Both the position numbers and the translations under genes were made by a program. A stretch of 64,000 nucleotides of DNA from Kudoa neothunni (lineage: Eukaryota > Animalia > Cnidaria), in assembly GCA_964304625.1 (NCBI GenBank), contig OZ199840.1, positions 5,321,200 to 5,385,199 on the forward strand, read 5' to 3'. The notes beneath the pieces were generated by a model that worked only from the letters and a program-made list of their open reading frames with translations, made no database searches and was not told where the DNA came from. Below, in pieces: positions 2,501 through 63,461 of this stretch. Within the stretch, counting starts at the first letter, position 1; each line of letters begins with the position of its first letter.

Positions 2501-3434
2501 ATGGATATGTTGGTTTCTATAACTGTCGGATTGTTTTGTATGAATTGACATTATTTATATGGAATTGAGATCATTGTAGATTTTTCCAGCATGCGAATTA
2601 CTTCTCAAGAATCCAATGTAATGATATGTATATGTTGACGAATAACTAGAATTTAATGCAGATAGAGTTAGTTCAGGGGACCGACATCGATGTTTACAAT
2701 GCTCTGGTCTCTTTAAGATTTAAATTACTTTTTCAAGGAGTTGAAATGGTAGGATAAATTTACTATATACAATTCTTATGTTATTTTGATAGCAAAGGGT
2801 CATAGATATTGGCTTAAAAAACCAACAACAATTTGTTAATCTCTACCCTGACCCCGATGATACCTGCAAGACATTTGCTTATTGTGTACTAGGAACAGGT
2901 TTACCGCATTTGATTACATTTATTATGATACCTGGTTTTGGAAATAGTGGTTAGGCTAGTCACTCGATTCAAAAACATAAGGAGTTGCTTTCCATGCGTA
3001 GTAATTACAAATATTTTAAATATAAAAATTTTAATGCATTAGGTGATTATCTATTCCGACAAAATTGCAGAAGAAAGGAAACACCGTGCGATTGATTATA
3101 AGGTATTATAAAAATTACTTCATAAAATTCATGTGGATTTTTTGGAGGTAAAAATACATAATAATACAATCACGGGTTTTTTACATAGGATAGGGAAAGT
3201 TTTGTTCAACACGCGAAAGGTAAATGCGTATTTCATCATTATTGTGAACCACTTCCAGGTTATTGTTTATAAGTTAATTGAAGAAATTATAATAATATAA
3301 AAAAAATATTTTTAGCATGTGGATACAATTCCTTGGACTCATCGAACCCAATGAGGATGGGCAACTTTTTAGGAGCAAGTTCAGAATTCAGCGATCATGA
3401 ATTTAAAAAAATTACATTGGAATTTAGACCATAG
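2501..3434 (+). CDS. Cys-rich secreted family paralog 1 (8 exons; last-exon frame uncertain)
   Basis: Spliced: MDMLVSITVGLFYFSSMRITSQESN/IELVQGTDIDVYNALVSLRFKLLFQGVEM/QRVIDIGLKNQQQFVNLYPDPDDTCKTFAYCVLGT/VTRFKNIRSCFPCV/VIIYSDKIAEERKHRAIDYK/DRESFVQHAKGKCVFHHYCEPLP/...KKITLEFRP*. GT-AG introns fall at the same positions as in the other copies. Confidence 0.8.
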
Positions 3435-3949
3435 ATTATCATCATCTATTTGAGAAATTAACACGTTGTACTATTCTCGATTTGTGAATGAATTTTTCGA
3501 AAATAAATAATCAAATTATTTTTATTGACAATAAGAATTAATAAATTATTTATCTCTCTTAATATTTTATTTAAATATTAGTTATTATATTTTGACAACT
3601 AGTTGCAACATATTAATACTGCTTCAGGTATAAAAACTCGTTGCAAAGTTCAATACAAACATATTTTTCATTAACAATTAAAATTATGATTATATATATA
3701 TATATAAGGAAAATGTAAGCAGATTCAAAAAAAATTTAATGCAAAAATATTTAATACTATTATAGAACTATTATAAGTATAATTTATAATGTAAAAATAA
3801 TTGAATATTATCGTACATATTTAATTTAAATACAATATTTTATTATTTTAATAATGGGAAATATAATGCTTAATTATTTTAGAGAAGAATTGTAGAAATT
3901 ATTATAATATTTAATTTTTATGTTTGAATTTATTAAAAACATATAGTAA

Positions 3950-4450
3950 CATAACGACTTGGATCTTTAAAGATTTTTATAATTTACTTAAAAATTACAT
4001 AAAAAGTAACGATAATTCGTAGAAAATGTTTTCAACACTTCTGATAGTGGAAAAATAAAAGTAGTATATCTAGATAGGTTATAATATTTGTGTATTGTCC
4101 TAATTCAGAAAATTTAATGCTTGATTTTGTTCTTGTATTGATGTAATTATAATATGAAGTTTTGAATATACATTCAATAGTATTTCTCATAAAAATTCTG
4201 GATATAATATTAAAGGATATGACTTTCAAATATATAAAAAATAGTTAAAAAAGGAATATACTCTGTGATGTGGTTTTAAATGTGAGTAATCCATTAGAGC
4301 TTAACATATAAATGCGAAATTTATTAAAGTAAACTAAAAATTACTATATTTTATTTTGGTTCATTGTATATTAGTAAATATAATATGAAGGAAAATTTTT
4401 AACTTTTTCCTTGGATCATATGTAAATGGTAATTAGATAACAACGTGAGT
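3950..4450 (-). mobile_element. Highly decayed piggyBac transposase fragment
   Basis: ORF 4032-4229 (FNIISRIFMRNTIECIFKTSYYNY...) loosely follows the piggyBac 'mSRxRFxxIxxxLHF' block. Weak match. Confidence 0.35.
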
Positions 4451-7205: not shown

Positions 7206-8148
7206 ATGAATATACCATACTATATTGTTTTATTTTGTATACAAATGATGAAATTTTGATTTAAATGATATATTTAGACATTCTATATATATACCACTCA
7301 TTGCAAGAATCCAATGTTTTTTCAATTTTATAAAATTATTATTACATAAATATTTAGTTTGATTTGTATCCCCCAACAATACCTATTTTAAGGCGTGTGT
7401 TAAACAAATTTCTTACAAAGATTTTATTTAGTGATGCTCAAAGAGTATATACTTTAAAAGTATTTATAATTAGGATTTTATAGCAACAAATAATCAAGGA
7501 TGGCTTGGCCAATTTGAAATGGTTTATCAATATGTATCCCGATCCAGGCGACACTTGCATTATCTTTGCCATTTGTGTTGGAGACACCAGTATTATTAAT
7601 TATTTAAACACTGCCAACAGTAATTTTTAATAGTCCATCGCTTTTTAAATGAAGATACATGCATGCCATGTGTAGTAATGTAAACACAAATATGACTTAG
7701 ATGTACTTCATATTAGATAGTGTTATATTTGGATTACTTGAAAACTTCGAGTCAAGATGGATCGCTAAATTTTAAGGTATATTGATGATTTATCGAATAT
7801 ATAAGAATGTCGACATATATTTTTTTAATGTTTCATTGATTGATTGTCCAATTAAACTATATCTAGGAGAGGGAAAATTTGCTTTTATCTTCTAAGGGTG
7901 TGTGTAATTCAATTGAATACTGCAACGGGTTACCGATTGACGTTGATAAAAGTATTTAAATTTATATTAAATAATATTTATAGATTATTATATTTTTTTT
8001 TCTTATTAAAAATTTAGTTCAATTGTTAAGCAACTATCAAACTGGTCAAAACATTGCTAATAACGCAATCAACGAAACTATGGCTATCCTTAGCAATGGT
8101 CACCCGTCACAAAAACTTAGATTAAGACTGGTGTTCTCGAAAGTATAA
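7206..8148 (+). CDS. Cys-rich secreted family paralog 2 (8 exons, intact)
   Basis: MNIPYYIVLFYILYIYHSLQESN/FDLYPPTIPILRRVLNKFLTKILFSDAQR/QQIIKDGLANLKWFINMYPDPGDTCIIFAICVGDT/IHRFLNEDTCMPCV/IVLYLDYLKTSSQDGSLNFK/ERENLLLSSKGVCNSIEYCNGLPIDVDK/IQLLSNYQ...QKLRLRLVFSKV*. Open through 7 GT-AG introns. Confidence 0.85.
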
Positions 8149-10539: not shown

Positions 10540-12722
10540 TAGACGTTCCGATACCGGACATCTGGCATTCGTGGACCGGAATTTGTGCGTATGATAGAAA
10601 TCGAATGGAATTGCATAAATAACAAAAAATAACTCATAAAATATAAATTAGTTATTATGATAAATGTAGAAACAATTTCTACCGTTCATAAGACAGCATG
10701 AAGCATTACATTTCAAACATACTACTTGGGTTTTTCTTCCGAAAATTTTACATCTTCTTGGAAATGAAGTTACTTCAGGCAAGTGACCTATATTATCAAA
10801 TCTTATTTGATCGGATAATGAAATGTATTTTTCCGTGGTAATTTAATGTTTTCGTTGGTATTGTTTGGAGTGGGATAAATATTTGGGCGGCCTCGTTTAC
10901 GAATTTTTCTGGATAATTGATTTTTATATAAAAATGATTCACAAATTGAGTATGTAAAGGATAGTGGATCAAGAGTTTCCGCTTTTGAGGTATTGCGCAT
11001 TTTGCATTGTCTTCTATATAGCAACCATGAATTGGTTATCGACGTATTGATACACCAAAAAAATTCGCATGTAGAATTTTCTGTACTTGTGACTTAATCT
11101 ATAACGTGACATTAACATGTCAGACAGGTCAACACCTCCCATATTCTTGTTGTATTCTGATACGACAGCTGGACAATCTACTTTAACTCGCTTCTTTTGG
11201 CGCCTATCAAATCTGAATAAAGTTGTTAAAGGTTCAATAGCAGAATGAGTTGATGATAACGTCACGACTGAACCATCGTACCATTAAGGCAACACTAAAC
11301 TTTCATTAGCTTTTTTTTTTGGAAGCAAAGGACATTCTTTAATTCGATTATTCCGGATGGTTCCCACAGAATAAATGCCTCTTTTTTCCGATATTCTTTG
11401 CATCTTGAATGACGTAAACCAATTATCAAGGTACACTAGAAAATTTCTGTTTCTAGGAAGATGCTCACATAACTTGATCACATAATCTCCAGAGCTTTCA
11501 GCGACCATAGGGGGTTTACCGTCATAAAAACTAAAGTTACAAACCATACCACTTCTTTCATATAATGCAAAAACTTTAAAACCTCATTTTGTAGGTTTAT
11601 TTGGGGTATATTGTTTTGCTCTACATTTACCCTTGAGTGGAATCATCTGTTCATCCACCGAATTGATAGTTTCGAAACTGATTTTTAAAAACTACATTCT
11701 CAAATGTTCCAACAAGGGTTGAATTTTTGCAAATCGATCGAAGCATCGAGAAGATTGATCCTTTGTAATATTTTCGTTGTCGTTAAAATGTAAATATTTT
11801 GATATCTGCTCGAATCTATCTCTCGAAAAGACATCAGAAATGGGTCGATAATTAAAATATTTAGACCAATTACATCTGTAACGGGGTATTCGAACAATCC
11901 CCATCAAGATCAGAACTCCAAGGTAGCTTTCGATTTCTGGAGTAGAGGTTCTAAAGTATGAATTATTCTGGATTGCGTATCGATTTGATTCGACAACAAT
12001 CAATTCAAGCAGTTCATTATCGAATAATCTATTAAAATAATCTATGGGATAAATTAACCCGCTTAGATTTTCAAAATGATCGTTATTATTGGATAATTCC
12101 TGTGGCAAACCTATGTTGCTCAAGGTTTTTTTCCATTTTATTTCTGAATTAATTTTGGAATTATCTGATGACATATTCTTCTCTTTTCATATTTGATGAT
12201 ATAATCACTGGATCGTCGTGAGAATACGTATCTGGTTCATATATGTCAGCATCAGTTAGACCAATGATTTCTGATAATTTGTTTTCACTTCATTATTAGT
12301 CCGAATGTCAGGATCCATTGTGGCTAATCCAAATCCAGTCCACGAATGCCGGATGTCCGGTATACGGACACGCGTTAAACATTGTATTATTTCAAAAATC
12401 ATACACCGAATTCGTTTATAAATATATTTTCTTAATGAAATTGATTATTTACATTACGTAAAATTTTTATTTTGGTAAATCATGAAAACCCTAAACATTA
12501 TGATCAAATTCTTTTGAATGCTACAACGGTATCGTAGTTCTAACTTTAAATATCTAATTTAATGACTATAATGTTTAGTAATAATTGTGAAATCTATTAA
12601 TAAGAAACAACTACTTTAATATATTGTACCGATATTTATCATATTACTAAATTTCGCTTAAGTAAGTTTCAGAATTAGAGACAAGTTGCTGTCCTGTATA
12701 GGGGACATCCGGCACGAAAGAG
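10540..12722 (-). mobile_element. piggyBac transposon with frameshifted transposase (left end not resolved)
   Basis: ORF pieces contain SRDRFEQISKYLHFNDN, DEQMIP, YLDNWFTS, YNKNMGGVDLSD and a C-terminal Cys-rich domain. Right terminus ...ggcacgaaagag|TTAA. Internal inverted repeats of about 30 bp at about 10544-10578 and 12338-12372. Confidence 0.9.
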
Positions 12723-12971: not shown

Positions 12972-13927
12972 ATGAACATCGTTATGCATATTAAAATAAC
13001 ATGGTGCTTCTTCCTTTTCTGTAAATTTATTTTGAATAAATACTGACATAAAATATAAGCTATTAGACTGAATTCTCACGCAATGCAGCAATTGGTAAAA
13101 ATTCTTTATTTTAAAACTAATATCAAATATTTTAGTTGGTGTTGTCATTTCAGGCAAGGGAACAACTAAATAAAAATTTATGTGCATTTTCAGGTGAGAG
13201 TATGGTAGACGATTATATTAAGGTGATTATCGTTACTAACTGTGTTGATTTAAATTATTAACATAGCAAAACATTATCGAAACTGCCTTTAATGATTTGG
13301 ACCTATTTGTAAATATCTACCCATCTACAACCGATATTTGTAAAACCTTAGCTATATGTTTAATTGATAAAAGTATTATTATCAATAAAAATTGCTTAAT
13401 TTTATTATAACTTAGTCGTTACTTTTAAAAACAATCATAATTGTTTTCCATGCGTTGTAATAACAATTATATGAAAATCAATGTTATATTTGAGTAGGTT
13501 GTAATGTACCTATATTATATTAGAATAAATAGCCATCTGGTAATTAATGAAAACGTAAGTTTGTTTACTATCATTTAAAAACATTTATTTAAAAATCTAT
13601 TAAAATTATAATGAAAAATGGTCTCCTTTCCGTGTAGGTTAAATTATTTTTGGCTAATGAAGCAAAAATTGAATGCCAAAATGAAAACCAATGCCGAGCG
13701 TTTCGATCTTTTCGTTCATGTATTATCTTTTATTTAATAATTTATTAATAGGAATTTAATTGTCTTAACAATCATATTTTTATTATTAATAATTTTATAT
13801 TTTAGATAATAGTCTCAACCAAATAAAATTGCTCGACCACAAAATCAACAAACAAATATGTGGTACACAGAAATGTTATGGTGATTACAAAATTATAAGT
13901 ATAAAGGCAAAATTTGAATATCCATAG
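12972..13927 (+). CDS. Cys-rich secreted family paralog 3 (8 exons, intact)
   Basis: MNIVMHIKITWCFFLFSIRLNSHAMQQL/LVLSFQAREQLNKNLCAFSGESMVDDYIK/QNIIETAFNDLDLFVNIYPSTTDICKTLAICLIDK/IVTFKNNHNCFPCV/VVMYLYYIRINSHLVINEN/VKLFLANEAKIECQNENQCRAFRSFRS/...YGDYKIISIKAKFEYP*. Confidence 0.85.
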
Positions 13928-16418: not shown

Positions 16419-17866
16419 CAGTAAGTAACCAATTTCACGCAATTTTTAAAAACCTATTTAATTAGAATACTGATTGGTCATTGTTTATACAATATCTTTC
16501 TTATAATATTTCAATGAAAATTTGTATAAAAATAGTTATAAAAGGCTGCGAAATATTGTAACTAAAAGTCACGTGATTGGCAAATTCGCGCACTTTTTTT
16601 CGGGTACTTCCTGTTTATTATTTGGTTAAGTTAATATTTAATGACAAAAACCGCCTATAACTATATGATATATATATATATATATATATATATATTGCCG
16701 AAAGGCACAATATTACTTACTATTACGAAAGTTTCCAATCTAATGACCCAAAAACTGTCACTGTATAACTTTTTTAAATATTTATTATCTCGTCTCCTAA
16801 TGGCATCCTAGAGATGAAAACTAAAGTAACCCAAATTATAAATGTTTGTAGAATGTAAAAATTGAAATTATCTGCACGCAAGACAATTTAATTCTGTTGA
16901 TGAAGATGTATATGAGTAGATACGAAGCAAAAAGATTGTAGTAGGCGTCGATCAATGATAATCATCAAGAGAAATCAATTAGCCAAAGAAAAAGGTTTAC
17001 CATCATATACAATTCGTGGAGGGTTTCGTTGTTTTAAAAAGAGGTCAAACATTTAAAAATAAAATTTACTAATTAATCTGCCGATGTTATGCCTGAAACT
17101 ACTTCAGAGTGGATCATTCAAATAAGAACATTTTTTAAAAGATAATCAGAAAATTTTATTTACAATGTAGACGAAACTGCCTTATTCTACCGATAGCAAC
17201 AGGGGAAGTAATTCATAGATAAAGCCGTGGACAGATAACAGCACATCGGTGTGACACTCGGACTTAGAGCCATGAGGTAATGGGTTCCATTCCGCCGGTA
17301 GTCAGACTACTGCTTCCGTGTCGGTGGGTCTCTATCCCATATTTGGGAGCTGTGATTAACGTGTACGCTCGCTGTGAAATGGGATGCATTGGCAGCCAGA
17401 TTTGCGTGAGGTGGGATGAGCGTGAATAGGAGTTTGAATCTCCGGAACCCATCGAAAGGCAAAGTGATTTGCAGTTCCCACAGAGCCAACGTCCTTAAAG
17501 AGATATGGTTTGGGGTGGTGGTCTTCCTGAGACGAGGATGTTTAGTGGGGTAAAGTCTCACACTACAGCATAAAGATAAGCGACGGGATTTCATGTTACG
17601 TCCTGCGGTGCATGAAGCGTTAATGGAAGAGGTCTGACCAACCAGAATTCCACAACCTAATAAGTTGCGCAAGGGGTTTTACTCTGTAAACAAAAAAAAA
17701 GTAATTCATAGGTCGTTCAAAAATATTATTGTGCTGTTTACACGTTTCTCGAGTTATAATTATCTTTTATAAATTAATGGCCTTTTAAACGCGACTTAAT
17801 CATTGTTAAATGTCAATTTTTCTGACATAATCGCGCGCGAAAGTGTGTTAAATGGATTGCCTACTG
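16419..17866 (+). mobile_element. Internally deleted pogo/Tigger element carrying a SINE insertion
   Basis: TA|cagtaagtaacc...ggattgcctactg|TA termini; residual FKKR...SADV...W...FIYNVDETALFYR. Confidence 0.75.
17219..17698 (+). mobile_element. tRNA-derived SINE, family B (different head and body, 3' tail shared with family A)
   Basis: Perfect 13 bp TSD aagtaattcatag (17206-17218 and 17699-17711); B-box-like gggttccattcc; last ~200 bp match the family A tail; poly-A end. Confidence 0.8.
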
Positions 17867-19824: not shown

Positions 19825-21046
19825 ACTAGAGCTTCAAAAATTCGAGGGTCGAGGATCCTCTAGTTCGAAGAGATTAAGTCAATGTATTAAAAAGATTGTG
19901 TGATTTTGTTACAGTGGAATCTTAAAATCAATGTTAGGAGAAACTTTCTTATCAAAATTCAACAATACATTAATTTTTGGAAGAAACTATTGTACTTCTT
20001 TTAAAATATCAGCTAAACTACAATACTACATTATCTGTGTAGAACATTGGACGTTGTCGCATACAAAATCGGAAATATAGTCGTTTCCTACAATTCAGCC
20101 TGTTATTTCACTCCATTTTCAAAAGTTTTTTCCATTTTTGCTCTTATCACATAAAATTACGTCATGTGGTTAAATTCAGATCAAAAAGAGTTAACTTATA
20201 AACTGGAAATAAATCTTAAGTCTGGCACATTCTGATTCACGTGGAATCACTATGTTGTTGACAAATACATAAAAAATTATTATTTCTCTATAATTTTAAC
20301 AAAATCGAAGTCGTTAATCGTCCACTCATTTTTTTTATTTTATCTGTTAGTGATAAGTTTGTAAACGTTCAATCTTGTGACTTCCTATTTTAAAAACAGA
20401 ACTTTCTAATTTATTTTATTTAAAATTAGAACGAAGATGTTTCAATTTAACTATGGCGTAATTTAGTGTGGGTTATTAGTTTATAAATTTTGTGCGTAGT
20501 TTATTCATGTTTGAAAAAATGTTAATAATATTTGTCCCAAAATTCAAACATGGAAATTTTTAATTTATTTTATTAATTTATCTTTTTATTTATGTCCATT
20601 GGGTTACTAAAAATAAAAATATAAAATAATTATTCTTTAATTGAGATTAACTTTAAAGTAGAATAATCATCACAATTAAAAATATACGATTTTTAATAAT
20701 TAAATCAATTATGGATGATAATATGACAAAAGAATTTTTTTATTATTTATCTCAACGGTATAAAAAAGATGAAAAATCTAATAATAAACATTTATTACCC
20801 ATTTTTTGAGTATAACTTGAAATATTACGTCATATTTTATCATCTACTTCAATATTTTTGGGTGGTTGAATGTTTCGCGCGTTTAACACTAATATAATTA
20901 CTTTACTGAGATATATTATCATTCAAAATATTTGTGAAAACTAGTAACAACCAAATAACGTTGTAATCATGAAATCTCTATCCAAATCCTTAAACATCCT
21001 CATTTCAACACATAATCACCCTCAATTTTTAAAAGCCTAATTATAA
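19825..21046 (+). repeat. Left arm of a near-perfect 1.22 kb inverted repeat
   Basis: Reverse complement of 24342-25577, with roughly 15 substitutions and one 13 bp indel counted by eye. Confidence 0.95.
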
Positions 21047-21475
21047 CTCAGGGTTACTCTGCGCTTTGATAAGACTTAACAATAAGATTATTGTATTAAT
21101 ATGATATAAACAAAGAGCAACATATTAAATATGAATACAGATAGGGTTATCAATCATGTTAATATCAGATGATAATCTTTACTAGTAAAATTTAATAATT
21201 AAAAAACTCAACATTCAAAGCAATAAAACTATTTAATTTTAATTAATAACTATAAAAATATATTAATAATAAAATTTATAATTTTAGGATCCGTGGCTAT
21301 TTTTATCATAATTTTTTATAATCTATATACTTATAAAATTTTATTCTGATAGTTATTTGTTGAATCATCACATTAAATTCCGTATTTATCGAATCAATAT
21401 GCCAGGTAATAATTTAAAGATAAGAGAAGTTATAAATAGATTACTCCATATTCTGTCATTGATATTCATAGTTAA

Positions 21476-22241
21476 ATGAAACTTACATTAGTATTAGTGG
21501 CTATAATAGGTGTTACTCCATTCCAATATATTTATTGAATAAATTTAGGATTTTCAATACTACGCAACAGCGTCAGAGGAATTACAGTATTTGGAAAATG
21601 TATATTTAATAATGTTTTACGCAAATGATTATACCAGGTTACTTTGAATGGTCTGTCTCGAGCTGAACTATTAAATTCTTACAAATTTTTGGCTGCAAAT
21701 ACGGTTTTAGATTCAAAGAAAGTATACTTTAATGAGAAATTTATATTAACTGGAATTAGGTAAAATTGGTGTTTTATTTAATGACTGATCGAGTGGATTC
21801 TTTGAGTGTATTTCCATATCACAAATACATTTGTAAATACCTTGCCATATGCAGGGCTAGTCAAGGTAATTTACAACAAAAAATAATGATTTTGTCTAAT
21901 TTTTAAAGTTCAACAGCTCCAAGCTGACAAATCTTGCTTGCCATGTATTGTAAACGATCATATTTGAGAATATATATTACCCTATTTTAGGTATTGAATT
22001 ATGTCGATATTACTCATAAAACTGTTGAAGATCCTAATGCGATTGTGAGAAAAGTAGTTTGTTTTTAAAAGAACATTAGTCGTTTGAAATTTATATACAT
22101 TGGAATAAAAAAAAATTTTAGTTATCAAAAAAAGCAGCCAAACAAGCCATAAATCTGTGTAACAGAAAGCGCTTTTGTAAAAGGCGATACGAAACTGAAA
22201 ACAACACGGCTTGTGCTTCTAATTCTCATGTAGAAATTTGA
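21476..22241 (+). CDS. Cys-rich secreted family paralog 4 (7 exons seen; 3' end uncertain)
   Basis: MKLTLVLVAIIGFSILRNSVRGIT/VTLNGLSRAELLNSYKFLAANTVLDSKK/VKLVFYLMTDRVDSLSVFPYHKYICKYLAICRASQ/VQQLQADKSCLPCI/VLNYVDITHKTVEDPNAI/LSKKAAKQAINLCNRKRFCKRRYETENNTACASNSHVEI*. Confidence 0.82.
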
Positions 22242-22739
22242 ATTTTACGTAAATAACTCTATTTACTTTGAATTAATAGAATTAATTTTTAGGAAATAAA
22301 TTCTACCTCATAATACTTTATTTTAGATGAACATTTAAATGATACATGATCTCGATTTAATACGCTTTCATTTATTAATTTTTATGTTACCTAGTTAAAA
22401 AATGTAAGAAAAATTTATTTGACAAAAAGCCGTGTCTCGATATTGCATAATATTTTGGCATCTGGGAAAATTACGCAAAATCTAGTCATCTGCGCACGCA
22501 CAACAACTTCTAATTTAACATTTCTTACAGAATAACTCATCTACATTATAATTTTTTTATTACTTTAAATGTAAAATTTTGTTTTCTTCCCAAAAATAAT
22601 ATCATTACACATTATTATCTACACATATGAATAATAAAATTTTGTATTAATTACTCCATAATGTTATATTATCTTCATATTAATTTAAAGGTTTTTCTTG
22701 CTAGTTTTTCAATAAAAATCAAGATTTATCAATTATTTT

Positions 22740-23940: not shown

Positions 23941-24341
23941 ATAAATACGAAATATGATTTTTATTATTTAATTCGTAAATTAAAACACCTAATGCTAATA
24001 AAACTAAATTACGCACTATCGAGGCACAACTATAATATTGTTTATAATGATATCTCTTGATTAAATTAAAATCTATTCTAAATTTGTGATTTATTATTTT
24101 AAAAGTTTAATGACAAATTCAAAAATGTTAATTTACCTTCAATATACGGAAGACAACGATTATACGTCATTTTTTACATTGTATTATGATCACAACAATA
24201 AACTAAATCAATAAACTAATTTTTTGTTACAGAATTAGGGAAAAATTATTAATAATCTCAATTGTACAGAATATTATTGTATAATTTTATGTTTAAAACT
24301 TCAAAACCTCATAAATTACTCATTTGAGTTTAAATCACGAA

Positions 24342-37561: not shown

Positions 37562-38463
37562 ATGAGAAACGGATTGGTTCTTGTAGCTTTACTCTGTATG
37601 TCATTGTTCATCAATGTGGCATGACTTTATATAGATTTATCGGAATTAAGTAGAAATGCTATATGTATTACGGTAGTTATTTTGATTTAATTTCGCTTAT
37701 TTCCTTTACTAAATAAATAAGGTCACCTTGTCCCCCGCTTGCACAGTCAGAATTGCATAATTCGTATCACTATTTGGAATCTAACATGGGTTTGGATTAC
37801 AAGATAGTAACCTCTTGCTTTTAGGTAGTCTTTTAGTTTTAATTTAGATGAATATTTTTAAATATCTTATGTCAAACAAACATAGTACATTAAAAGTGTT
37901 CCCATTTCATGACTACATCTGCGGGTATCTTGCCTTTTGCATAAATAACGAAGGTATCATCACAAATAAACATACTATAATTAATATTTATAAGTACGAC
38001 AACTTCATGCGGATAAAACCTGCTTATCATGCTTAGTAAATTTTTTCATATTAAATATATATATGTATAAAATTATTTACTGATAAATTAGGTGTTGTAT
38101 TACATTGATTTAACGCATGAATATGTGTATACTCCTGAAATGATAACGCTAATCGTAATTATTAAAATCCATAATAATTCGTTTTCGTAATTTTTAAATA
38201 ATTATTAGGTTTCAAATAGTGACTTCAAAAACGCTAAAAATATTTGCAATAAGAAGCGTTTTTTGCAGACCTATGTCACAGATTTCGGAATTTTCAAGTG
38301 GTGCTAATAACCATTGATGTAAGAAGGAAGGATATTTTTTATTAACAATTAATTTTATAGTTGATATACACGAAATGACTGAATATATTATATAATTTTA
38401 GATATGCAATATGTTTTTGGCAACAATAGAAAATTAGAAACATACTCAGTTGGTCAAATATAA
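37562..38463 (+). pseudogene. Cys-rich secreted family paralog 5 (frameshifted as assembled)
   Basis: MRNGLVLVALLYLSELSRNAICIT/VTLSP[+1 in C5]LAQSELHNSYHYLESNMGLDYKI/...LKVFPFHDYICGYLAFCINNE/VRQLHADKTCLSCL/.../NICNKKRF[+1 in T6]CRP. Closest to paralog 4. Confidence 0.75.
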
Positions 38464-38870: not shown

Positions 38871-39370
38871 TTTTTTTTGTTTAAAAGATAAAACCCCTGG
38901 CGCAACTTATTAGGTTGTGAAATTCTGGTTGGTCAGACCTCTTCCATTAACGCTTTAGGCAACGCGTGACGTAACATGAAACCCCGTCGCTTATCTTTAT
39001 GCGGTAGTGTGGGATTTTAACCCATTAGACATCCTGGTTTTGAAACAACTAACACCCACCATACTTTGGAATAATCCAGAATAATCTGGGAATGTCGACT
39101 GAACGTGGGTGTCGACTCTGCGGAAACCCCCTACTGGGTTTATATTTCGTTCCTGTACTCCGGCGATTATGAGCTCCTGAGCTCTACCCTTCCTTTAGAC
39201 CCCCTCCCAGCTGCAAGAAAGATCACGAAATAAATCATAGACTCTATTGATTATTACAGTCTTCCTATTTAATTTTGGATTAATAGTTCAGGAAAGTCCG
39301 GACTAGGCTTCAAACTTGCAACCTTATGGTATGTGATGTCGACCTAACACCATTATGTCATATTGTCCAG
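38871..39370 (-). mobile_element. tRNA-derived SINE, family A
   Basis: Collinear with 5462-5953; poly-T at the left end. Confidence 0.85.
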
Positions 39371-39857: not shown

Positions 39858-40802
39858 ATGAAGTCATTTACTATTATTCTATTTGTGGCTATATGTAATT
39901 ATAATAATGTCACTATCTGTTAATACATTTCAAGATTCTAGATTGTCGAAAGTAACTATTCAAGATTTAAAAGTATGAAAAAATTTAATATACTTCAACC
40001 AAGAAAACCCCTTTTCAAATATGTGAATTTAGCTTCAACTAACTGACGGTGCAAAAGCGGAATGGTTAACATCATTCATCTATTTGAGTAAACAAGGAAT
40101 TTTCACCGAGAGTGAAGTAATATGAGATCATTTAAAAGAATAACGTTTGATAGTTGAAAAAAATATATTACTTGAGCAAAAATGCGAATTATGGCTTCAA
40201 AATTTTCCCAAATCATCAAGATTTGTGCAAATATTGGGCTGTTTGCAATGGTGACCAATGTAAAAATTTTAAAATAAAATTTTGGTTTATTATCAATTAG
40301 TAATCGCTTTTCAATCTGATAAACATTGTTCAACGTGCGTGGGTACTATTTATAACATCTTAAATGAATAATCTACTACCGATTATTTAGCTTACTGTTT
40401 ACACAGTAAGTTGGGAAACGGAAAGGAAAAAACCAGCTGGATTATTTAGAAAAGTAAAGAACATCACCAATCCTTGATTTTTTTAAATTATTAAATAAAA
40501 TTATTTAATTGGTAGAGTTGGCATACGATTTATGAAGAATCAAAACATTTCTGCATCAGAGAAATATTTTGTTTTCCAATACCCCAAGAAGCACCAGAAC
40601 CTTCACGTAGATGTATATATTGTTCTCTTTAAAATGACACATATGTATATGAATATTTTCTTAGTAATTTAATTATTTAGGTGACACGTTAAGAGACACA
40701 ATCCACGATCGACCTGACACTATTAGAGTTCCCACACAGGATATTCCATCATTTAATAATTTTCGTGTACGAGAAGTACAACTTGCGTACACCGCGCCTT
40801 AG
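39858..40802 (+). CDS. Cys-rich secreted family paralog 6 (8 exons, intact)
   Basis: MKSFTIILFVAIYSRLSKVTIQDLK/LQLTDGAKAEWLTSFIYLSKQGIFTESE/LKKIYYLSKNANYGFKIFPNHQDLCKYWAVCNGDQ/LIAFQSDKHCSTC/LTVYTVSWETERKKPAGLFRK/SWHTIYEESKHFCIREIFCFPIPQEAPEPSRR/CDTLRD...FRVREVQLAYTAP*. Confidence 0.85.
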
Positions 40803-43774: not shown

Positions 43775-44534
43775 ATGAAGTTTATTTTCATATTATAACG
43801 TGGATTATACAAGGTTCTAATTATAAAATAGCATCTTTATTTGATAGTAGATTTAGAATGCATTAAAATATCATCACAACATATTCAAGTAATTAAGATC
43901 GCTATTGATATATTAATTATTTTTATTAGCTTAAATTTGTTGGTTGCGGTCTGAAACACATGCTAAAAGCAATCGAAAAAATTTAAATGCATACAATATT
44001 CGTAGAATACCCTAGGAAAGTACTCTGCGGATTACCAATTAAAAATTTATAATAATTATGTAGATGTTGATAGTCCAAAAAGTTCTAATGAATGTTGGAG
44101 AAGAATTTGACGGATATCCTAGACATATTAACTTTTGCAAGATTCATTTCTTTTGTTATAAAGATAAAGGTAAATTTTTACCTTTGTGAAATTTTAAAAT
44201 ATATTATTTACACAGTGGAGTCAGTACGCTATAAACGGGCCTGCTCGCCCTGTATTGTAATTTATTATTTTCTATAAGTTCTCAATATATTCTAGCTATT
44301 TATATATAAGTTTAAAAATATGTTTGAGACAAATCGCAAAAATTGATATTAATTAGGCTTAGCGTTTGAAATAATTTTTAACAAAAAATATATATTGTTT
44401 GTTTCATTCTTATTCATTTAGAGATTCATGATAAGAATGAAGAGTGTGGGAAGCAACACAATGATGATATTTTGAATAATCTTATAGCTGGATATGAATA
44501 TATAGAGGTGACTGTCGAAATTAAGTCACCTTAA
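43775..44534 (+). pseudogene. Cys-rich secreted family paralog 7 (pseudogene)
   Basis: Exon 1 frameshift in a T run, in-frame TAA in exon 3 (AIEKI*MH), exon 7 not found. Retains FDGYPRHINFCKIHFFCYKDK/VESVRYKRACSPCI and last exon ...GYEYIEVTVEIKSP*. Confidence 0.78.
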
Positions 44535-47810: not shown

Positions 47811-48672
47811 ATGATATTTCAAAAATTAATAAACATACTTATTCTAGGTAATTGAAAATAGAAATAAATGTCTTATTTAATTTAGGTTCGATGTTATTAA
47901 AGTCTTCGTCACAAAAAACTAAAGTGATTTTAATGTTTTTAGTTATTAATTTATACAAATAGATGATTTTTGTTGGAAACGGGCTGACCCAAATATTGAG
48001 AGCGATAGAAAGTGTCAAAATAAATAGAAATATTAGAAGAGACATTAGAAAAGTAATTTAAACAACTAATTATTAAGTTAATATCAATCTGCAGCTGATG
48101 GTCATTGACAACGCGTTGATCGATTTGAATGAAGCATTCAGCGATTTCCCCTATCGCCCAACCTTATGTTCTCTTCACTTCGTATGCAATAAAAATAGGA
48201 GTAAGCATTCTATTTATTTCCGAAATATATGAAAAAATTATTAAATAGTAACCTGGATAAAAAATCCAAAAACCTGTTCTCCCTGCATTGTAATTTATTA
48301 TTTGCTACAAGGTTTTAAGATTTATAGCTGTTTAATTTCCTTTATTATAAAAATGTATTGCTGGAAGGAAGAGATATGAGTTCGCATGTAATTATTTATA
48401 TTTTATATAAAAATTATAAGATTGTCTTAAATATTTTATAATAACTGGTTGTAGGAGAGGAAAGAGTTCTATGAGAGCGCTAAGAGGTTCTGCATTCGAG
48501 AATATTTATGTGAAGAATTTGAAGGTAATTTTACCTTTATAAGAGTTGAATTATAGTTTACAGTCTCAATATATAATTTTAAAATGATAACTTTGTAATA
48601 ACGTTTTATTTAGAGGAACCAAGTAGAACGAATGAATGTTTACCGTCAATTCTTCCGAATTTCGAATATTAA
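47811..48672 (+). CDS. Cys-rich secreted family paralog 8 (8 exons; short last exon as assembled)
   Basis: MIFQKLINILILGSMLLKSSSQKTK/MIFVGNGLTQILRAIESVKINRNIRRDIRK/LMVIDNALIDLNEAFSDFPYRPTLCSLHFVCNKNR/ITWIKNPKTCSPCI/LFNFLYYKNVLLEGRDMSSH/ERKEFYESAKRFCIREYLCEEFE/EEPSRTNECLPSILPNFEY*. Confidence 0.83.
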
Positions 48673-52576: not shown

Positions 52577-54858
52577 CCCATAGCGGTTTTTCATATTTAA
52601 ATCTTTTAAAAAATTTAAACTACAAACAGAGCACAATTATTAATGATAAAGCGTAAAATATTTCTTCTAGAATCATGTGTGAAGTTTGAAAATAATCCAA
52701 AATACTAAAGTGCCGAAAAGGGAACGATAAACCATCTACGTGCGTTTTACTAATTATGCATTCATGCGTTTGCGCCGAGGAAAAATACAATAATATATTA
52801 ATGGAACGACAAAATATTACGAGTTATGATAGATCATTGAACATTTAATATGCATATAATTTTTTGCATATTCAGGCACAAATAGATAGTGTTTTTTTAC
52901 AAACAACGCATTTGTGTCTTTTTTTCAATGGGTCTGCACTCATTGTTGGCCAATCACATAACAGAGCAGCGTGAATATTTGCAAGAGATGATATTCTAGT
53001 AATTTTTTCAGTGCGGTCAGTTTGGATCATATTGGCTACAATACGCCTAATATGAGTCAATAATTTTACGTTGCATTTATTCTTATAATTGAGCCATTTG
53101 CAAGAATTGACCGCTGCGATTGAGATAATTTTTGTAAACAAGGGCCAGTACCAATTTTTGGAACGAATTTTTACTCTGTAACAGGATATATTATTGTCTG
53201 CGATGTCAACGCCTCCCTTATGTTTTTTAGACATATGACTGATCTATCGTCACGTAACACTTCTTGTTTTATAATAACGCTTTGTATACTGGATTGATTA
53301 AACAGAAAGCGCATTGCTAAGAAAGGCAACTGGTTTTGTATCGTTCCAATAAACGCAATTTATTTTGGTTTAGAGGTCTTCGTACGACTCATAAAAACCT
53401 CTCAGTTTCTTCTCCATTACCTTAGGATCTATTAAGGAACATTTACATCTCTCTTCTTCAATTCAGCTATCAATTTATAGGAGGTAAAAAATTATCTAAA
53501 AAAACATGAACGTCATTTCTTCCTTCAAGTTCTTCAACAAATTTTAATACAACACTGCCACCCAAACCAAAACTGTTGCAATACGATTCCTCCTTACCGG
53601 TGTACACGTTAAAACTGTAAATGTAACCATCAGAAGATGCTAAAACCCATTGCTTAAAGCCAAAACCAACCGGTTTCCCTTTCATGTGCATTTTGCAAGT
53701 ATGATGGCCTGTGTATGGTATCATTTGTTCGTCAATTGCAAAGTTATTATGGAAAAAACCAAATTCTTTAAGATTTTTATTCATTTTTTCAATTAATGGT
53801 CTTACTTTGAAAAGTTTATCCAGTTTTATCTAACTTTGAAGTGTCGTTAAAATGTAGATATTTTCTTATTAATTTGAATTTACTGCATGGCATTGACTTT
53901 TTCACAAGTTCAACTCCAGCGTCCATAGCAGACTCCCAATACATATGCTGCTGGGATAATTTATTATATCCAGTTAATAATAAAATGCCGACGAAACATT
54001 TGAGTTCCTTTATCGTCAAATGCAAATTTATGATCGTTCTTTTGTTGAGCGTATACATTTGTTTCTTTAACTATATGCAATAACACGTTTTCGGCAAAAA
54101 CTTTCACACGACTCATACATGTTCGAGTCATCATTATGGATAATATCTATACCATGGGTCATCATATTTGCATTTATTGAGTTTGTCGACAATTGCAACG
54201 TGGGATGATTTTATGGCATCTGGCTCCGCCATTTTTCAACGTTTTTCATCATGTTCTACGTTAATGAAAGTTTCTATTTCACCGCATATCTCAGGAACAG
54301 TTCCAATTTCAATGTTATCGTAATCTCTGTGGACGAACTCATCCTCTTCATCGGTCAATGTATCCACATGATCTGGAGGTATGACCACAAAATCAACTGT
54401 ATTTTGGTAATTCATCGATATTTTCAATATTTTCGATAGCATCAACTAAGTTTCTGTACCTCATCTTAAAGCTTTTACCGCGAGGTTAACAAAAAGATTA
54501 ATTGAGAAATCGCACGCCAGTGGTTTATTTTGATAATTATTTGTAGCTCTCTTTTATGTTATGTTTAATTCTTTACTTATATTAAACTTCTGGTAATATA
54601 TTATTATATTCTAAAAATATAATATTTTTAAATAACAGTTTAGTAGAATTCCTGTTCTTTTTGTACGTTGTCACATTACAAGGGCAATATAGAACAGTAT
54701 CTGGCACAATGTAAAATACATTTAATGAATATTTTTATATAATATAGATATTATACATATAAATCATATATCCTAGAATTACACTATTAAACAAATTATT
54801 GTAAGATATAGAGTGGCGTGAAGAATGTGCCGAAAAGGGAACGAAAAACCGCTATGGG
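52577..54858 (-). mobile_element. Full-length piggyBac transposon (PGBD2/3-like), transposase frameshifted
   Basis: TIRs cccatagcggtttttc and gaaaaaccgctatggg, flanked by TAAA and TTAA. Internal copy of gtgccgaaaagggaacg at about 52710. Motifs YLHFND, IDEQMIPYTGHH..KGKPVGFGFK, FLDNF, KGGVDIAD, KNWYWPLF. Confidence 0.93.
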
Positions 54859-57467: not shown

Positions 57468-58325
57468 ATGATGATGCTAATAAATGCTTCATTCCTCGTC
57501 CTTTGTAACCGAAGATATTTATAATTTTTAAATTCTGTTTAGTGTGTTTAAACCTTAAAACTTCGTTACAACAAACAAAGGTATTCTAATTTCGAATTTT
57601 AATTTTAATAATGTGTATAGATTCGGTTTAATAGGAAAGGGCTCGTACAAATATTAAGCTCAATAGAACAAATAAAAGAACATGAATATTTTAAAAATGA
57701 TCCCCAGAAAGTAAGTTCACGCGTAAATTATAAATTATACATTAAAAAATAGATGATGATCGTTAGAAAAGAATCAAACGACGTAGATGAATCGTTTAGT
57801 AACTATTTCCAACGTCGTATGCTCTGTTTGGCGCATTATATTTGTAACAGAAACGTTGGTAAATTTTTTGGATCAATTGCATGTATATAATATTTTCTCC
57901 GATAGTAACATGGATAGTAAATCCCAAAACATGTACACCATGCATTGTAATTTCTTATTGATTTGATTATAATTAAATTAAATGATTTAAGCATTTTACC
58001 TCAAAATATTTGAAATACATTCGGTTCGCTTATCCAGTAATAACCTATGAAGTAATTTGATTACGTTATTATGCAAATTACAACATGATAATAATTTTTA
58101 TAATTTGGTAATGTATAATTAATTGAATTAGAATGAAAAAAAGTTATATGAGGATGCAAAAGCTATTTGTATTGAAAAATCATTATGCGATCCCTTTGAT
58201 GGTAAACTTTTGTTAATATTTTATTTTTGTTTTTACGTTTTAAATATAAAAATAGATGAGATTCATAAAAATTATTTAATTTAGATGTACCAGATAAACC
58301 GAATACATGTATTCCGAAGAATTAA
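57468..58325 (+). CDS. Cys-rich secreted family paralog 9 (8 exons; short last exon as assembled)
   Basis: MMMLINASFLVLLCLNLKTSLQQTK/IRFNRKGLVQILSSIEQIKEHEYFKNDPQK/MMIVRKESNDVDESFSNYFQRRMLCLAHYICNRNV/VTWIVNPKTCTPCI/HFTSKYLKYIRFAYPVITYE/NEKKLYEDAKAICIEKSLCDPFD/DVPDKPNTCIPKN*. Confidence 0.83.
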
Positions 58326-58755
58326 GCACACGCTGTCATGTCGCTCTGAAGGATATTTACGTAGAATTTATGAATATTTCAATTTAACTGTCGTCGAATT
58401 GCATTTATACATTATTTTTTCAAGAGATGCACTTATTTTCTATTTCAAATTTCGTGTACTGAGAATGGCGGTTTATAATAATTACTATAAATTGGAATAA
58501 TTTTATCTAAAATAATTAAAAAATACTGCATTTATGAAAGATCAATCATACATGTTTGTTGTTCACGTTTAAGCCCATTAAATAATCAAAAATAATACTA
58601 TTTTTGAATATTTCCAATAATATATATATCTTAAATAATATATTCTGTCGAAAATTATACAAATAAATTAAATATTTATTTTTATTTTTAATTAAAATAA
58701 TTTTAGTTAATATATGCCAGAATAACACAAGCTTTTTGAGTGACACTCCAAACCA

Positions 58756-58856
58756 TTTTTTGTTTGAAGATCAAACCTCTGGAGCAACTTGTTGGGTTGT
58801 GAAGTTTTGGCTGGTTAGGCCTTCTTCAATTTGCTGAAGGAACCGCAGTGTCATAC
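58756..58856 (-). mobile_element. SINE 3' tail fragment
   Basis: ttttttgtttgaagatcaaacctctggagcaacttgttgggttgtgaag matches the tail at about 5462-5560. Confidence 0.7.
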
Positions 58857-61100
58857 ACGAGGTATTCGGTTATCGTTAATCCCGTGAGGATTAGAGAAAA
58901 GTTATTGAAAATTTATTATTGACCACTTTTCCGTAAATTTTTGATACGTGCGCAGAAATTTAATATATTTCTTATTGATGTAATATTATCAAATAAAGAA
59001 TTATTAACTTGTGGAAAGATTTTTATCCTTCTACCATAAATTTAAAAAAATCTGGTGGCTACGAATTTAGATAGCTATCATTTTCAAAAATGGAGGTTTT
59101 AACCGAAATCTTTATGTAGTCGGATTTTGAACGAACTATTCATTTATTGAGAAATAATAGTTAACTCGATAAATTATTTTAAAAATACTAGAATGCTGTT
59201 ATATAATTTAGTTTCATGGTGAATGGTTGAGCTACAGAGACATACATATAAATTGTTAGCATTATTTTTGAAAGTATTATTTTAACAATATAGATATTTT
59301 CTAAATGTTTAATCATAATTCTTGCTTTATTTTTTTACTTAAAATAAATGGATAAATTTTTGCTTCCGTTAAAAACTCGTTAATTCTTGAGATGACAACG
59401 CAAAGAACTATCTGAACAACAAAAAGAAGTAGACGTATAAAATTAGCTCATAAATCATTTAGATGTCTTTTATAGACGTGAATTAAATTCCAGACTTAAA
59501 TAGAAGTTTAAAAAATTTATACATATTAAAGTTATTCGAATTTGTTTTTTTTTGACTGAATTGTTTAGTTTTATATAAATTGTACAAAAATGGCCGGTAG
59601 TAGATTTTGCATCAATAGCACTCAATTTGTTCTACTAGTTATGGTGACAGTTTTGAGTGGATAAATCGCAACGAAAGAAAATTGAAAGTTTTTAAATTAA
59701 GGCCCGATCTATTATCGTAAAAGCTCCCATAAGTAATTATTTTTTTAAAATAAATTCCTTTAAGAATTATTTTACATATTTAATCACCTAAAATAAATCG
59801 GGTTTCTTGACTCTAAAGGCTTTAATCAGTTATAAACTATAGAATAAAAATTATGCTATAGTACCCATTTTCCAGAATGTTTCTTCTGAATTTAATCCAA
59901 GATTATATTACACGAGGAAATTAATTTGGCATTGACCCAGAATTAGTCTGGGAAAGTCGTCTGAATGCGGGTGTCTGCTGTAAGAAAACCCCCTACTACG
60001 TTGTGTTTCGTCCCAGTACCCCGGTATTTATGAGCACCTGAGTTCTACCCTCAATCAGGCCCCTATCCCAGCTGCAAGAAAGACCACGATAAATCGTAGA
60101 TCCTTGCGATCACTACAACCTTCCTACTTAATTTCGGATTAGAAGTACGGATACACCCGGGCCAGACTTCGAACTCACAACCTCCAGATATGTGAGTCGC
60201 ATACAACACCACTTGGTCATATTGTCTAGTCTTGGTAGCCAATGCATGGTAGGCTGGATGGGGATATTTGATGGACCGCAAATTTAAGGCCACTGTTATA
60301 AAGCCTAATTTATATGGTAAACATATTTGTTGGTTTCTTCTAAATCTAAGTTTGGATTTTTGTAGGAAAAACTTTATTATGAATATGAACGTATGGCTGA
60401 AACAAATTATTAACACCTGTTGGAGGAAACTTCGGCATGTGCGATCCCTTATGGTAATGTTTTTATAGAAACCGTCTAGAATCAATCTTAAGTCATTAAA
60501 AGTGTTTAGTGAACGTTATGCTCACACTCAGGCAGGTCTCAATAACTGACGCAATCTTCCAATTTATTATTATTCTATGTATAAAGGAACCTTCTTTATT
60601 GGGTCCTAGAAATGAAATAAGTCTTTTCAATACTTTGCTAAATTCATTTATTGAAATGATTATTTTTAAGAATCACACGTGTATCAAAAGCTGGCGAAAT
60701 AAATCGTAGAATGATATCTTTTAAAGTTTTTATGTCGAAGTTTATTTTTAGTTTTGATTTTACTTTATAAATAGAAATTATTATTTGGAATTTAATGTTT
60801 CGAATAAGGAATATTATTTCTTCATTATAATATTTAGGCACATATAATGATAATTTAAAATAAATTTCTGCTCATAATAATGACTAAATGGTGTTCAGTA
60901 TTTTTAAATAATTAATTAAAGTATTAATCTGCATTGATTCATGAATTATATCTGTATTTAATGTATTTAGCGTGCGAAATAAAACAAAATTTTTTCAAAG
61001 ATCCCACATTGCGTCCTTGGGGTTGAAAAAATTATATGGGTTTATTCGATCTTTCCTGATTTTAAATCTTAAATAATTATGTAGAAAATACGTTTTTATT
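58857..61100 (+). mobile_element. Possible highly decayed CMC/Chapaev3-like transposon
   Basis: Begins CAC. Fragments MAGSRFCINS..., VDKSQRKKIE (about 59590-59690) and GIFDGPQI (about 60260) recall the 'GPQIR' transposase family. Right boundary is a guess. Confidence 0.35.
59933..60230 (-). mobile_element. SINE family A, 5' two-thirds
   Basis: Matches about 5640-5950; minus-strand head tgaccaagtgg (A-box-like)...gagttcgaagtc (B-box). Confidence 0.8.
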
Positions 61101-62515
61101 TTTTGATTGTATTTATACGATAAAAATTTTATCTCCTATTTATTGCGAAAAATATCTTGGGTAGTGCTTTCGTTTGTTAGAAGGTTAATATGCTTGTATT
61201 AAAGTAAAATACAACCGTTTTGTTTCTATCAAACTATACATAAGGGTTACAGACGCCAATATTTGTTGATAACATAATGTTATCTTTCAACTTATATATG
61301 TATAAATTATTTTACTTACTTAAATATAATATTTGGTGTAGTTTACATATTTTAAGATCAAGATATCAGATACCTTCTATTTTAATATGGTTGGATTACC
61401 CAATACTTATACCTTTTCACTAAAATAAATTATTTTTTAAAAGTTATTTCATTATGACATGCAAAAAGTTGTTTTTGTTTGAAGATTTTTAAAAAATTAA
61501 TTCTATTTATGACTTTTTTAATTAACGTGATTTTATTACATTAAATGACATTAATCATTATTGGTATTTATAGTATAGAAAAAATACAGACGTTTTTACA
61601 TGATACATACAATTTGTAATTTATATTTCATTATAAATAATGAATGTATCTATTAAATATATTTTAAATAGAATTTTATTTATAATTATATTTTTAAAAA
61701 TATAAAACCTGATCTACATTTGTAAAATATTGAATACACACCGACAAAATATGTATTAATAGCATTTAATATTGATCATTTTATTATGAATAAAATAAAT
61801 TTATAATTGATTAATAATTTTATTCTAATATATTGATAAATTAAGATATGATTTGATTAGTTAATTGATGTGATAAAGCTATAAAAATTTTGACAAATAT
61901 TAACATTTTATGGAATGTAAAAAATAATGTTATAATAAATAAAATTCAATATTTTAACTAATACAATATCAAAAATTACTTTTTAAATTATATCATACTA
62001 GGTCAAATTGAATATACATTTTACTGTTCCCATTATCTATAATTCTTAGGTTTATATTCATAGGATAAAAATTTGATTCTTTATCTTATATGGAAATAAA
62101 ATTAATTTTTTTAAAATTTATTAACAAATACAATGATAATTTAAATTAACTATAGTAATGATAAAATCAATTATGAGTTTAAATTCCTTAATTGTCTGTC
62201 TTAATTTTATTATTTATAGATAAATGCATTCTTAATTACAAGAGTCTTGTAATAAACAATAAAAGTAAGTTATTTATAAATAGAAATATTCGTGATCTAG
62301 AAATGTTATTATTTAATTATTTTTCAAAGTTCTAGCAATCATTATGATACGCGAAAAAATTCAATTCTTATATACGAAAATATCTTATCTAAACTTTTTC
62401 AATCTAATATTCATATAAATATTCAATTACTATTATAGAAAGATATTAATATATGATAACGCTATATATAAAGAGAATAATTTTTTTGTATAATCACCGT
62501 CAACAATATTATTCG

Positions 62516-63461
62516 ATGTATCACATAGTAACGCAGTTTCTATATGTTCTAGGTATTTGAAATGTCGAAAATATTCTAATCAACATTTAATAGCATTAGG
62601 CTCAAAATATACAAACCAAGACCCAAACGTAATTATTTGATTTAATATAGGGTTTTATAATAATATAACCTAGTTTGAATTATCAGATCCTGTGCTATAT
62701 GATATATATGAATGTTTGAAATCGTTTAAAGAAAAAGAATTATTTCAGGATGATAACAAGGTAATAAAGTTAAAATCAAAGTTATTTCAATAAAAGGTCA
62801 GTTGAAAATAATTGGAGAAGAAATAGAACACCTACATGGGTTTGTGAACAAATATCCTGAACCGAAAGATATATGTACAATCATTGCCGTGTGTAATGAA
62901 AATAAAAGTATTGTTTTTACTGAAATACTATAAAAAAATTAATTATAAAAAAGTCATAAGGTATAAACAAAATAAAGAGTGTCTGCCGTGTTTAGTGAGA
63001 AAAATATTTATGTTTATTTATTCAATATGTTCTATCAATAGTTGGTTCTTTATTTGGATACATTAACTTTGGAATTAAACCACAAAAAAGTCTCGTATAA
63101 AGTAGATATAACTGATAAACTAATTCCATTTTATTAATTAATCTTTTTGAACAAATGAAGAAAATAATTAATTATCACAAAATAATAATATAGGACAGAG
63201 AAAAGTTCCTTCGTGATGCCAAAACTAAATGTGTTGAAGTAGGTCATTGCGACCATTTTGAAGTAGACCCAGGAGATGGTAAAAATATTATTATTTTATT
63301 CACAATTATTTTATAATTCTTAAATTAATGTTCATTAATTTTGAATTATATTAACGATTAATTTAGATGATCTAATCGGAGAAAGAGATGATTTCGACCA
63401 AGTTCGTAGTTGGTATCATGGAATGGCGAAAAAAATGACCTTTGAATTTTCAACCCCCTAG
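62516..63461 (+). CDS. Cys-rich secreted family paralog 10 (8 exons, intact)
   Basis: MYHIVTQFLYVLALGSKYTNQDPN/FELSDPVLYDIYECLKSFKEKELFQDDNK/LKIIGEEIEHLHGFVNKYPEPKDICTIIAVCNENK/IIRYKQNKECLPCL/LVLYLDTLTLELNHKKVSYK/DREKFLRDAKTKCVEVGHCDHFEVDPGD/DDLIGERDDFDQVRSWYHGMAKKMTFEFSTP*. Confidence 0.85.

Follow-up and report, generated by a model that had tools for sequence, protein, structure and literature searches.

The window examined here is a 64,000-nucleotide stretch of the genome of Kudoa neothunni (C3:5321200-5385199, i.e., positions 5,321,200 to 5,385,199 of contig OZ199840.1 in assembly GCA_964304625.1), and it holds a tandem array of ten co-oriented genes that belong to one family of cysteine-rich proteins. 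All ten are on the plus strand and are readable solely by splicing short exons. The window is AT-rich, with GC contents ranging from 0.22 to 0.37, and the genome comprises 40,260,978 bases in 4 contigs. The published assembly, which was obtained from yellowfin tuna data, has 40.2 Mb in three chromosomes and a mitochondrion; its median intron is 49 bp, and its annotation was built from protein hints, since few RNA reads mapped (PMC12239612). The sequencing runs in which the window is found share their label with large WGS and RAD data sets of fish type. A preliminary description of the window, made from the DNA letters alone, had proposed ten co-oriented genes, and a family gene was found at every one of the ten proposed starts (10/10). 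The first gene (g1) was read by hand; for the others, GT-AG models were enumerated under the intron phases given in that description, together with three-frame displays. The joined spliced models were built from coordinates by local scripts and used for translation checks, alignment, statistics and tree construction, and the broken copies g5 and g7 were kept as read. Protein lengths are given in amino acids (aa).

2501..3434, plus strand: g1, intact, 184 aa; exons 2501-2537, 2580-2617, 2662-2748, 2793-2898, 2960-2997, 3043-3102, 3189-3258, 3316-3434; all introns GT-AG, reading frame open to TAG
7206..8148, plus strand: g2, intact, 191 aa; exons 7206-7236, 7278-7315, 7358-7444, 7484-7589, 7634-7671, 7717-7776, 7867-7951, 8018-8148; start of exon 4 set to 7484 to give the 106 nucleotides (nt) of the family
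12972..13927, plus strand: g3, intact, 189 aa, mature part with 3 extra cysteines; exons 12972-13020, 13060-13094, 13136-13222, 13267-13372, 13416-13453, 13498-13554, 13638-13713, 13806-13927
21476..22349, plus strand: g4, intact, 159 aa, choice of last exon uncertain; exons 21476-21509, 21549-21586, 21638-21721, 21760-21865, 21909-21949, 21991-22053, 22122-22212, 22327-22349; alternative last exon 22395-22450
37562..38395, plus strand: g5, with two frame problems; exon-like pieces 37562-37595, 37635-37672, 37722-37806, 37848-37953, 37995-38035, 38092-38154, 38209-38300, 38361-38395
39858..40802, plus strand: g6, intact, 192 aa; exons 39858-39894, 39935-39972, 40033-40116, 40154-40259, 40301-40338, 40391-40453, 40516-40606 (alternative donors 40612, 40621), 40681-40802
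43775..44534, plus strand: g7, pseudogene; exon 1 43775-43813, exon 3 43930-44019, exon 4 44064-44169, exon 5 44216-44256, exon 6 44296-44346, exon 7 region 44422-44534
47811..48672, plus strand: g8, intact, 166 aa; exons 47811-47847, 47886-47923, 47963-48052, 48095-48200, 48249-48289, 48328-48387, 48455-48524, 48614-48672
57468..58325, plus strand: g9, intact, 160 aa; exons 57468-57504, 57543-57580, 57621-57710, 57753-57858, 57906-57946, 57992-58051, 58132-58201, 58285-58325
62516..63461, plus strand: g10, intact, 181 aa; exons 62516-62552, 62594-62628, 62674-62760, 62802-62907, 62954-62994, 63042-63101, 63194-63278, 63367-63461
1858..1960, plus strand: possible eleventh exon-4 relic, weak; open frame ending ATYPYPDGTC LIHTH and then a stop, matched by the exon-4 hidden Markov model (HMM) at E 0.037 over 11 residues only

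Eight of the ten copies are intact, g5 has two frame losses, and g7 is a pseudogene. Each intact model comprises eight exons with intron phases 1,0,0,1,0,0,1; thus, the common intron positions and phases of the preliminary description hold in all eight intact copies. The exons measure, in order, 31-49, 35-38, 84-90, 106, 38 or 41, 57-63 and 70-91 nt, with an eighth of variable length. All 56 introns of these eight models (56/56) are GT-AG, with donors that are chiefly GTA and acceptors that are chiefly TAG, and their lengths are 37-114 nt (median 44.5). The GC content is 0.34 in the exons vs 0.19 in the introns. The eight intact models encode proteins of 159-192 residues.

The two remaining copies are broken in different ways. 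In g7 there are at least four defects: a stop at codon 8 in exon 1, an in-frame TAA in exon 3, an exon 6 that runs into a stop and has no donor, and an exon-7 cysteine pair that lacks its second cysteine; exons 4 and 5 are still intact. This copy is a clear pseudogene, which bears out the earlier remark that pseudogenes lie in the array. In g5, the frame is lost just past the exon 3 acceptor at the family position (around 37722-37746) and a second time within a run of T in exon 7 (38256-38268), so that its last conserved cysteine is out of frame. An independent set of contigs was available for part of this DNA. It is identical to the assembly over g9, but in 3.3 kb of nearby intergenic DNA it shows four single-base gaps against the assembly. 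The bases missing from these independent DNA-run contigs are at 61662, 61691, 61888 and 62244, all in AT-rich intergenic positions, a pattern that points to indels of homopolymer type, whether true differences or errors, close to the genes. Thus, the frame problems of g5 could be assembly errors, and g5 is either a pseudogene or an intact gene with assembly indels.

An HMM of exon 4 was trained on the eight intact window genes, with g5 and g7 left out, and both strands of the window were scanned. The two left-out copies were recovered (g5 at E 1.2e-6, g7 at E 6e-5), and besides the ten copies there was no exon-4 HMM match below E 0.03 on either strand of the window, which therefore holds exactly ten copies and perhaps one relic (at 1858..1960). 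The same structure is found elsewhere in the genome. Of 19 further genomic copies, 17 have AG and GT flanking the 106-nt exon 4 at identical codon positions; the eight intact window genes and 11 genes modelled elsewhere (exons 1-7) agree in their intron positions and phases; and every match to a separate exon-7 profile lies about 360 nt downstream of an exon-4 match. Despite saturating divergence, the copies have preserved their open frames and splice sites, which argues for function. The ten loci are confirmed as real tandem protein-coding genes.

The family extends well beyond the window. A genome-wide exon-4 profile built from 10 sequences matched 50 places, and a later one built from 29 sequences gave 62 matches at a cut-off of E<=0.1, of which 55 reached E<=2e-4; these counts are tables of profile matches rather than curated gene models, and they point to a family of about 55-60 loci, roughly 1% of K. 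neothunni genes. Within one 420-kb region of C3 there are 41 exon-4 loci, split by strand: a minus-strand group of 18 spans 5.049-5.167 Mb, and a plus-strand group of 23 spans 5.316-5.469 Mb. Lesser clusters are at C1:2.956-2.994 Mb and C2:11.29-11.38 Mb, and scattered single copies are found elsewhere. The preliminary description had an array of at least ten paralogues spanning the window; at least ten copies are indeed there, but the array extends far past the window limits.

Homology searches were made exon by exon. Among 1.84 billion proteins, the exon-4 profile found one match, a 35-residue exon fragment (E 3.8e-7) that is encoded on a 1,978-base metagenome scaffold from ENA (L035; GC 0.26). 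The gene on this scaffold runs from about 1265 to the end of the contig, where it is cut off in exon 7, and it has the exon order, intron positions, tiny introns and cysteine frame of the family, with eight cysteines. The scaffold has no DNA match in this genome; therefore, the family is present in at least one other organism. As far as searched, the family seems to be restricted to K. neothunni and that one other organism, and the earlier statement that the family was not recognisable agrees with the exon-level searches.

Alignment of 19 proteins over 144 columns shows how little has been conserved. The only invariant residues are six cysteines, as the earlier claim that almost no other residue is invariant had it, and 34 of the 144 columns are conserved merely as hydrophobic. 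The cysteine frame is C-x5-C / C-x-P-C / C-x5-C, and the proline of a Y-P pair and the proline of C-x-P-C are near-invariant. All 19 models have a hydrophobic stretch right after the methionine; thus, the hydrophobic N-terminus and the six-cysteine frame first noted in the window recur in all 19 models. Given this N-terminus, the proteins are probably secreted. Past the leader, no segment of membrane-spanning length was seen in the 19 models. The isoelectric point (pI) of the mature proteins ranges from 5.2 to 9.4.

Exon 4 ends in the pattern P-x-x-(I/L)-C-x5-C, which continues as x-G. Exon 5 had been described as 14 codons ending in CxxC; the CxxC is present, and it is nearly always C-x-P-C, but the exon has 38 or 41 nt (12-13 residues) and ends directly in CxxC only in g1, g2, g3 and g6, with one further residue after it in the other six copies (g4, g5, g7, g8, g9 and g10). 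Exon 8 has a variable first part followed by a conserved L-G-N-H-x-I-x-N-V-T-L-x-F-x-x-P and a stop, and this terminal motif is recognisable in g1, g2, g3, g6, g10 and the C1 cluster. Two additional cysteines, the first within exon 6 and the second early in exon 7, eight residues ahead of the pair there, are present together in seven members (L017, L018, L021, L023, L024, L029 and the foreign L035); both cysteines are absent from 20 members, with a single degenerate copy left ambiguous. These two middle cysteines are missing from all ten window copies, which have the additional upstream C-x5-C. Such joint presence and absence is expected of disulfide partners. A crude script combining Chou-Fasman rules and hydrophobic moments was uninformative as to secondary structure, and an internal duplication relating the exon-7 module to the exon-4 module was considered and dropped (hhalign probability 1.5%).

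Any two window copies are 15-39% identical (median 21%), with a family-wide maximum of 49%. Synonymous sites are saturated (pS 0.65-0.87), and the ratios of nonsynonymous to synonymous substitution (dN/dS) that could be computed at this saturation are few, at 0.24-0.55. In a maximum-likelihood tree, the terminal branches are about 1 substitution per site, the C1 cluster forms a clade of its own, and the window genes fall in at least four deep lineages: g1, g2 and g10 with the upstream neighbour L013; g8 and g9; g4 and g6; and g3. Low identity, saturation and long terminal branches thus indicate that the array is old. By these measures the copies are ancient, in the pattern of a birth-and-death multigene family.

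Most of the regions upstream of the genes have a motif in common. When the 150 nt before the ATG were examined for 21 genes (ten in the window, 11 in L011-L028), 17 of the 21 regions contained the GATA-type site AGATAA/TTATCT, vs 22% of random 150-nt windows; the binomial p is about 1e-8, for a motif that was chosen after a k-mer scan. A TATAAA/ATAAATA-like box is often found near -45 to -50. The comparison is with random windows, and the AGATAA enrichment may be a general feature of Kudoa promoters.

Taken together, these features suggest the following architecture. Exons 1-2 would encode a short hydrophobic leader, a putative signal peptide; exons 3-4 a helical-looking part ending in P-x-x-(I/L)-C-x5-C; exon 5 a short hydrophobic stretch leading into C-x-P-C; exon 6 a very hydrophobic segment; exon 7 a helical-looking part with the second C-x5-C; and exon 8 a variable linker and then the conserved, strand-like end motif. 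Once in the secretory pathway, the six cysteines would make three disulfides and lock a compact, mostly helical scaffold. The C-x-P-C and exon-7 segments would probably be stapled together as an antiparallel hairpin, nested as in saposin-like proteins, with the seventh and eighth cysteines (exon 6 and the start of exon 7), where present, supplying a third, inner rung; the exon-4 pair would be bonded internally or to some other partner. Around this fixed core, almost all exposed residues would have diverged among the paralogues, giving dozens of different surfaces on one fold. The most likely function would be that of a repertoire of lipid, membrane or protein binders, either released in tuna muscle fibres or built into spores. 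The reading that we tentatively prefer, and hold to be possible rather than probable, is therefore a composite one: real genes of a large, old family that encode secreted proteins of about 160-190 residues, with a saposin-like nested disulfide hairpin, serving as a repertoire of extracellular binders.

Saposin-like proteins (SAPLIPs), i.e., saposins, NK-lysin, amoebapores and caenopores, are among the closest analogues. Genes for SAPLIPs have been expanded in several parasites and in nematodes. Like them, the Kudoa proteins are predicted to be small, secreted, probably helical and fixed by disulfides. The end of exon 4, P-x-x-(I/L)-C-x5-C-x-G, has the local pattern of the end of a saposin domain, the C-x-x-C segment of exon 5 resembles the start of one, and the full saposin order C-x2-C...C...C...C-x5-C occurs in exons 5-7 of the seven eight-cysteine members. 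Most family members, however, are missing the middle cysteine pair, and in the eight-cysteine members the whole cysteine span is about 38-45 residues, roughly half that of saposin, in which the domain normally has 75-80 residues and folds into four to five helices with nested disulfides. The family also has about 55 further N-terminal residues and a proline inside the CxxC, and its proteins are about twice the length of one saposin domain. The saposin link would be, at most, that of a miniature hairpin version. Another comparison is with swaposin, the circularly permuted saposin known as the plant-specific insert of aspartic proteases, in which, as here, an end-like C-x5-C is followed after about 13 residues by a start-like C-x-x-C. 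The third pair of swaposin, however, consists of single cysteines flanking these motifs, whereas the family has a second C-x5-C after them and no conserved cysteine before; moreover, the exon-4 and exon-7 modules are unrelated by hhalign.

Several observations weigh against the preferred reading. The distance from C-x-P-C to C-x5-C in the six-cysteine members is about 33-36 residues vs about 70 in canonical saposins, and the upstream C-x5-C has no obvious saposin-type partner. A six-frame search of the genome with SapB_1 (PF05184) and SapB_2 (PF03489) at E<=10 gave two weak matches for each, none of them at a family locus; exon-4 peptides had no match in Pfam at E<=10; and the exon-level searches of PDB and ESM Atlas gave, respectively, chance matches only (E>0.09) and no usable match. 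Several of the window proteins have an odd number of cysteines. The seven members with the extra cysteine pair may be one clade, and the co-occurrence of the two cysteines could then reflect a single event. No run recorded as RNA contains this stretch, and three metatranscriptome runs labelled with the host species had zero reads on 57468-63461; the parasite was not shown to be present in these runs, so they do not constitute a test.

In one alternative, the copies are non-functional, decaying remnants of a repeated element, and what look like exons are open frames that arose by chance. The zero RNA reads, the two broken copies among the ten and the transposon fragments in between would suit such a view; that eight of ten copies retain seven GT-AG introns, their phases and open frames at saturated divergence, that exons and introns contrast in GC, and that the structure is constant across three chromosomes and in another organism make it very improbable. 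A serious rival, if an unlikely one, is a structural role in the spore or polar capsule, with the proteins exported to the valves or capsule wall and cross-linked by disulfide exchange via C-x-P-C, in the manner of minicollagen/NOWA polymerisation. Wall proteins are usually less divergent than the 15-39% identity seen here, the family is without repeats or low-complexity collagen-like stretches, and its cysteine pattern is unlike minicollagen domains. Nevertheless, this cnidarian makes spores that have six valves and polar capsules, C-x-P-C resembles redox-active dithiol motifs, the odd cysteine counts could allow intermolecular bonds, and the upstream AGATAA/TATA-like arrangement held in common hints at co-regulation. 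If the C-x-P-C were instead the active site of a thioredoxin-like fold, where a C-x-x-C opens the helix that follows a beta strand of the beta-alpha-beta core, the proteins would be secreted thiol-disulfide oxidoreductase-like enzymes, which is very unlikely: a hydrophobic stretch, 4-5 residues, C-x-P-C and then a hydrophobic segment make up a local pattern that recalls the WCGPC of thioredoxins, but enzymes rarely diverge as far as 15-39% identity while keeping nothing but their cysteines invariant, thioredoxins do not have the two C-x5-C pairs, such enzymes are not usually found as dozens of paralogues, and there was no exon-level Pfam match (exon 5, at 12-13 residues, is too short for a profile search).

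The preliminary description had seen in the array the birth-and-death pattern of effector, toxin or variant-antigen families at a host interface, and a role of this kind is plausible. Tandem arrays of divergent paralogues with pseudogenes, such as characterise effector and variant-antigen families, were found, as was a variable surface; no membrane anchor is evident, and the fit to variant surface antigens is poor. Were the family to serve antigenic variation, the parasite would present or release one or a few members at a time to evade fish immunity, with the arrays as the archive. The large tandem arrays, segregated by strand and interspersed with pseudogenes and fragments of transposons, and the extreme surface divergence over a fixed scaffold would suit this reading, but the protein tails have neither a transmembrane segment nor a hydrophobic C-terminus of the type that precedes a glycosylphosphatidylinositol (GPI) anchor, the copies are ancient (no recent gene conversion or young duplicates were seen, and maximum identity is 49%), and the parasite resides within muscle fibres, a site of low antibody pressure; we regard this explanation as improbable. 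The VSP-like proteins described in another myxozoan, Sphaerospora molnari, resemble the Kudoa family in being parasite-restricted and multi-copy, with an N-terminal leader and with cysteines as the main conserved residues (bioRxiv 10.64898/2026.02.11.705288). The S. molnari VSPs have ectodomains of 300-700 aa that are rich in CXC/CXXC motifs, and they also have a transmembrane helix and a cytoplasmic tail that is conserved (bioRxiv 10.64898/2026.02.11.705288), whereas the Kudoa proteins have 160-190 aa, six cysteines and no anchor.

The DNA between the genes has features of its own. A 1.2-kb inverted repeat encloses g4: its arms, 19841-21049 and 24339-25548, consist of two adjoining pairs, are 98-99% complementary and have their inner ends 3.3 kb apart. 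The repeat may be either a structure of the foldback or transposon type or an artefact of the assembly. Open frames with matches to a piggyBac-type transposase (PF13843, DDE_Tnp_1_7) occur on the minus strand at 11692-12174 (E 2.4e-25) and 52872-53234 (E 2.8e-4); by these matches both are transposon fragments between family genes. Similar translated pieces (NLLGCEILVGQTSSINA) occur at 17307-17672 on the minus strand and at about 38890-38970 and 58770-58840 on the plus strand, and the element that carries them is probably a dispersed short repeat. The array is interrupted at 29356-36496 on the plus strand by long open frames of 113-231 aa with no Pfam match. The depth in the DNA contigs climbs sharply at 59868-60267.

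Myxozoans are economically important parasites of fish, with tiny gene complements of about 5,300 predicted genes, and K. neothunni has been linked to the post-harvest softening of tuna flesh; to our knowledge, almost nothing has been established about the dealings of myxozoans with the host cell. The exons of the present family are too short for ORF-based or hint-based annotation (an ORF being an open reading frame), and the published annotation, which was made without RNA, probably misses whole gene families. In its boldest form, the saposin-like interpretation would make this family the largest effector repertoire of Kudoa: a miniaturised, saposin-derived, disulfide-stapled hairpin, with about 60 secreted paralogues (roughly 1% of the genes) that each show another surface on the one scaffold and bind or perturb the membranes and proteins of host muscle cells, and a fold variant and effector class unknown outside Myxozoa. 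We consider this rather unlikely. If the proteins are expressed and secreted, they would be prime candidates both for a part in host interaction or spore building and as species-specific diagnostic antigens, and they would serve as a test case of how much divergence a disulfide scaffold tolerates.

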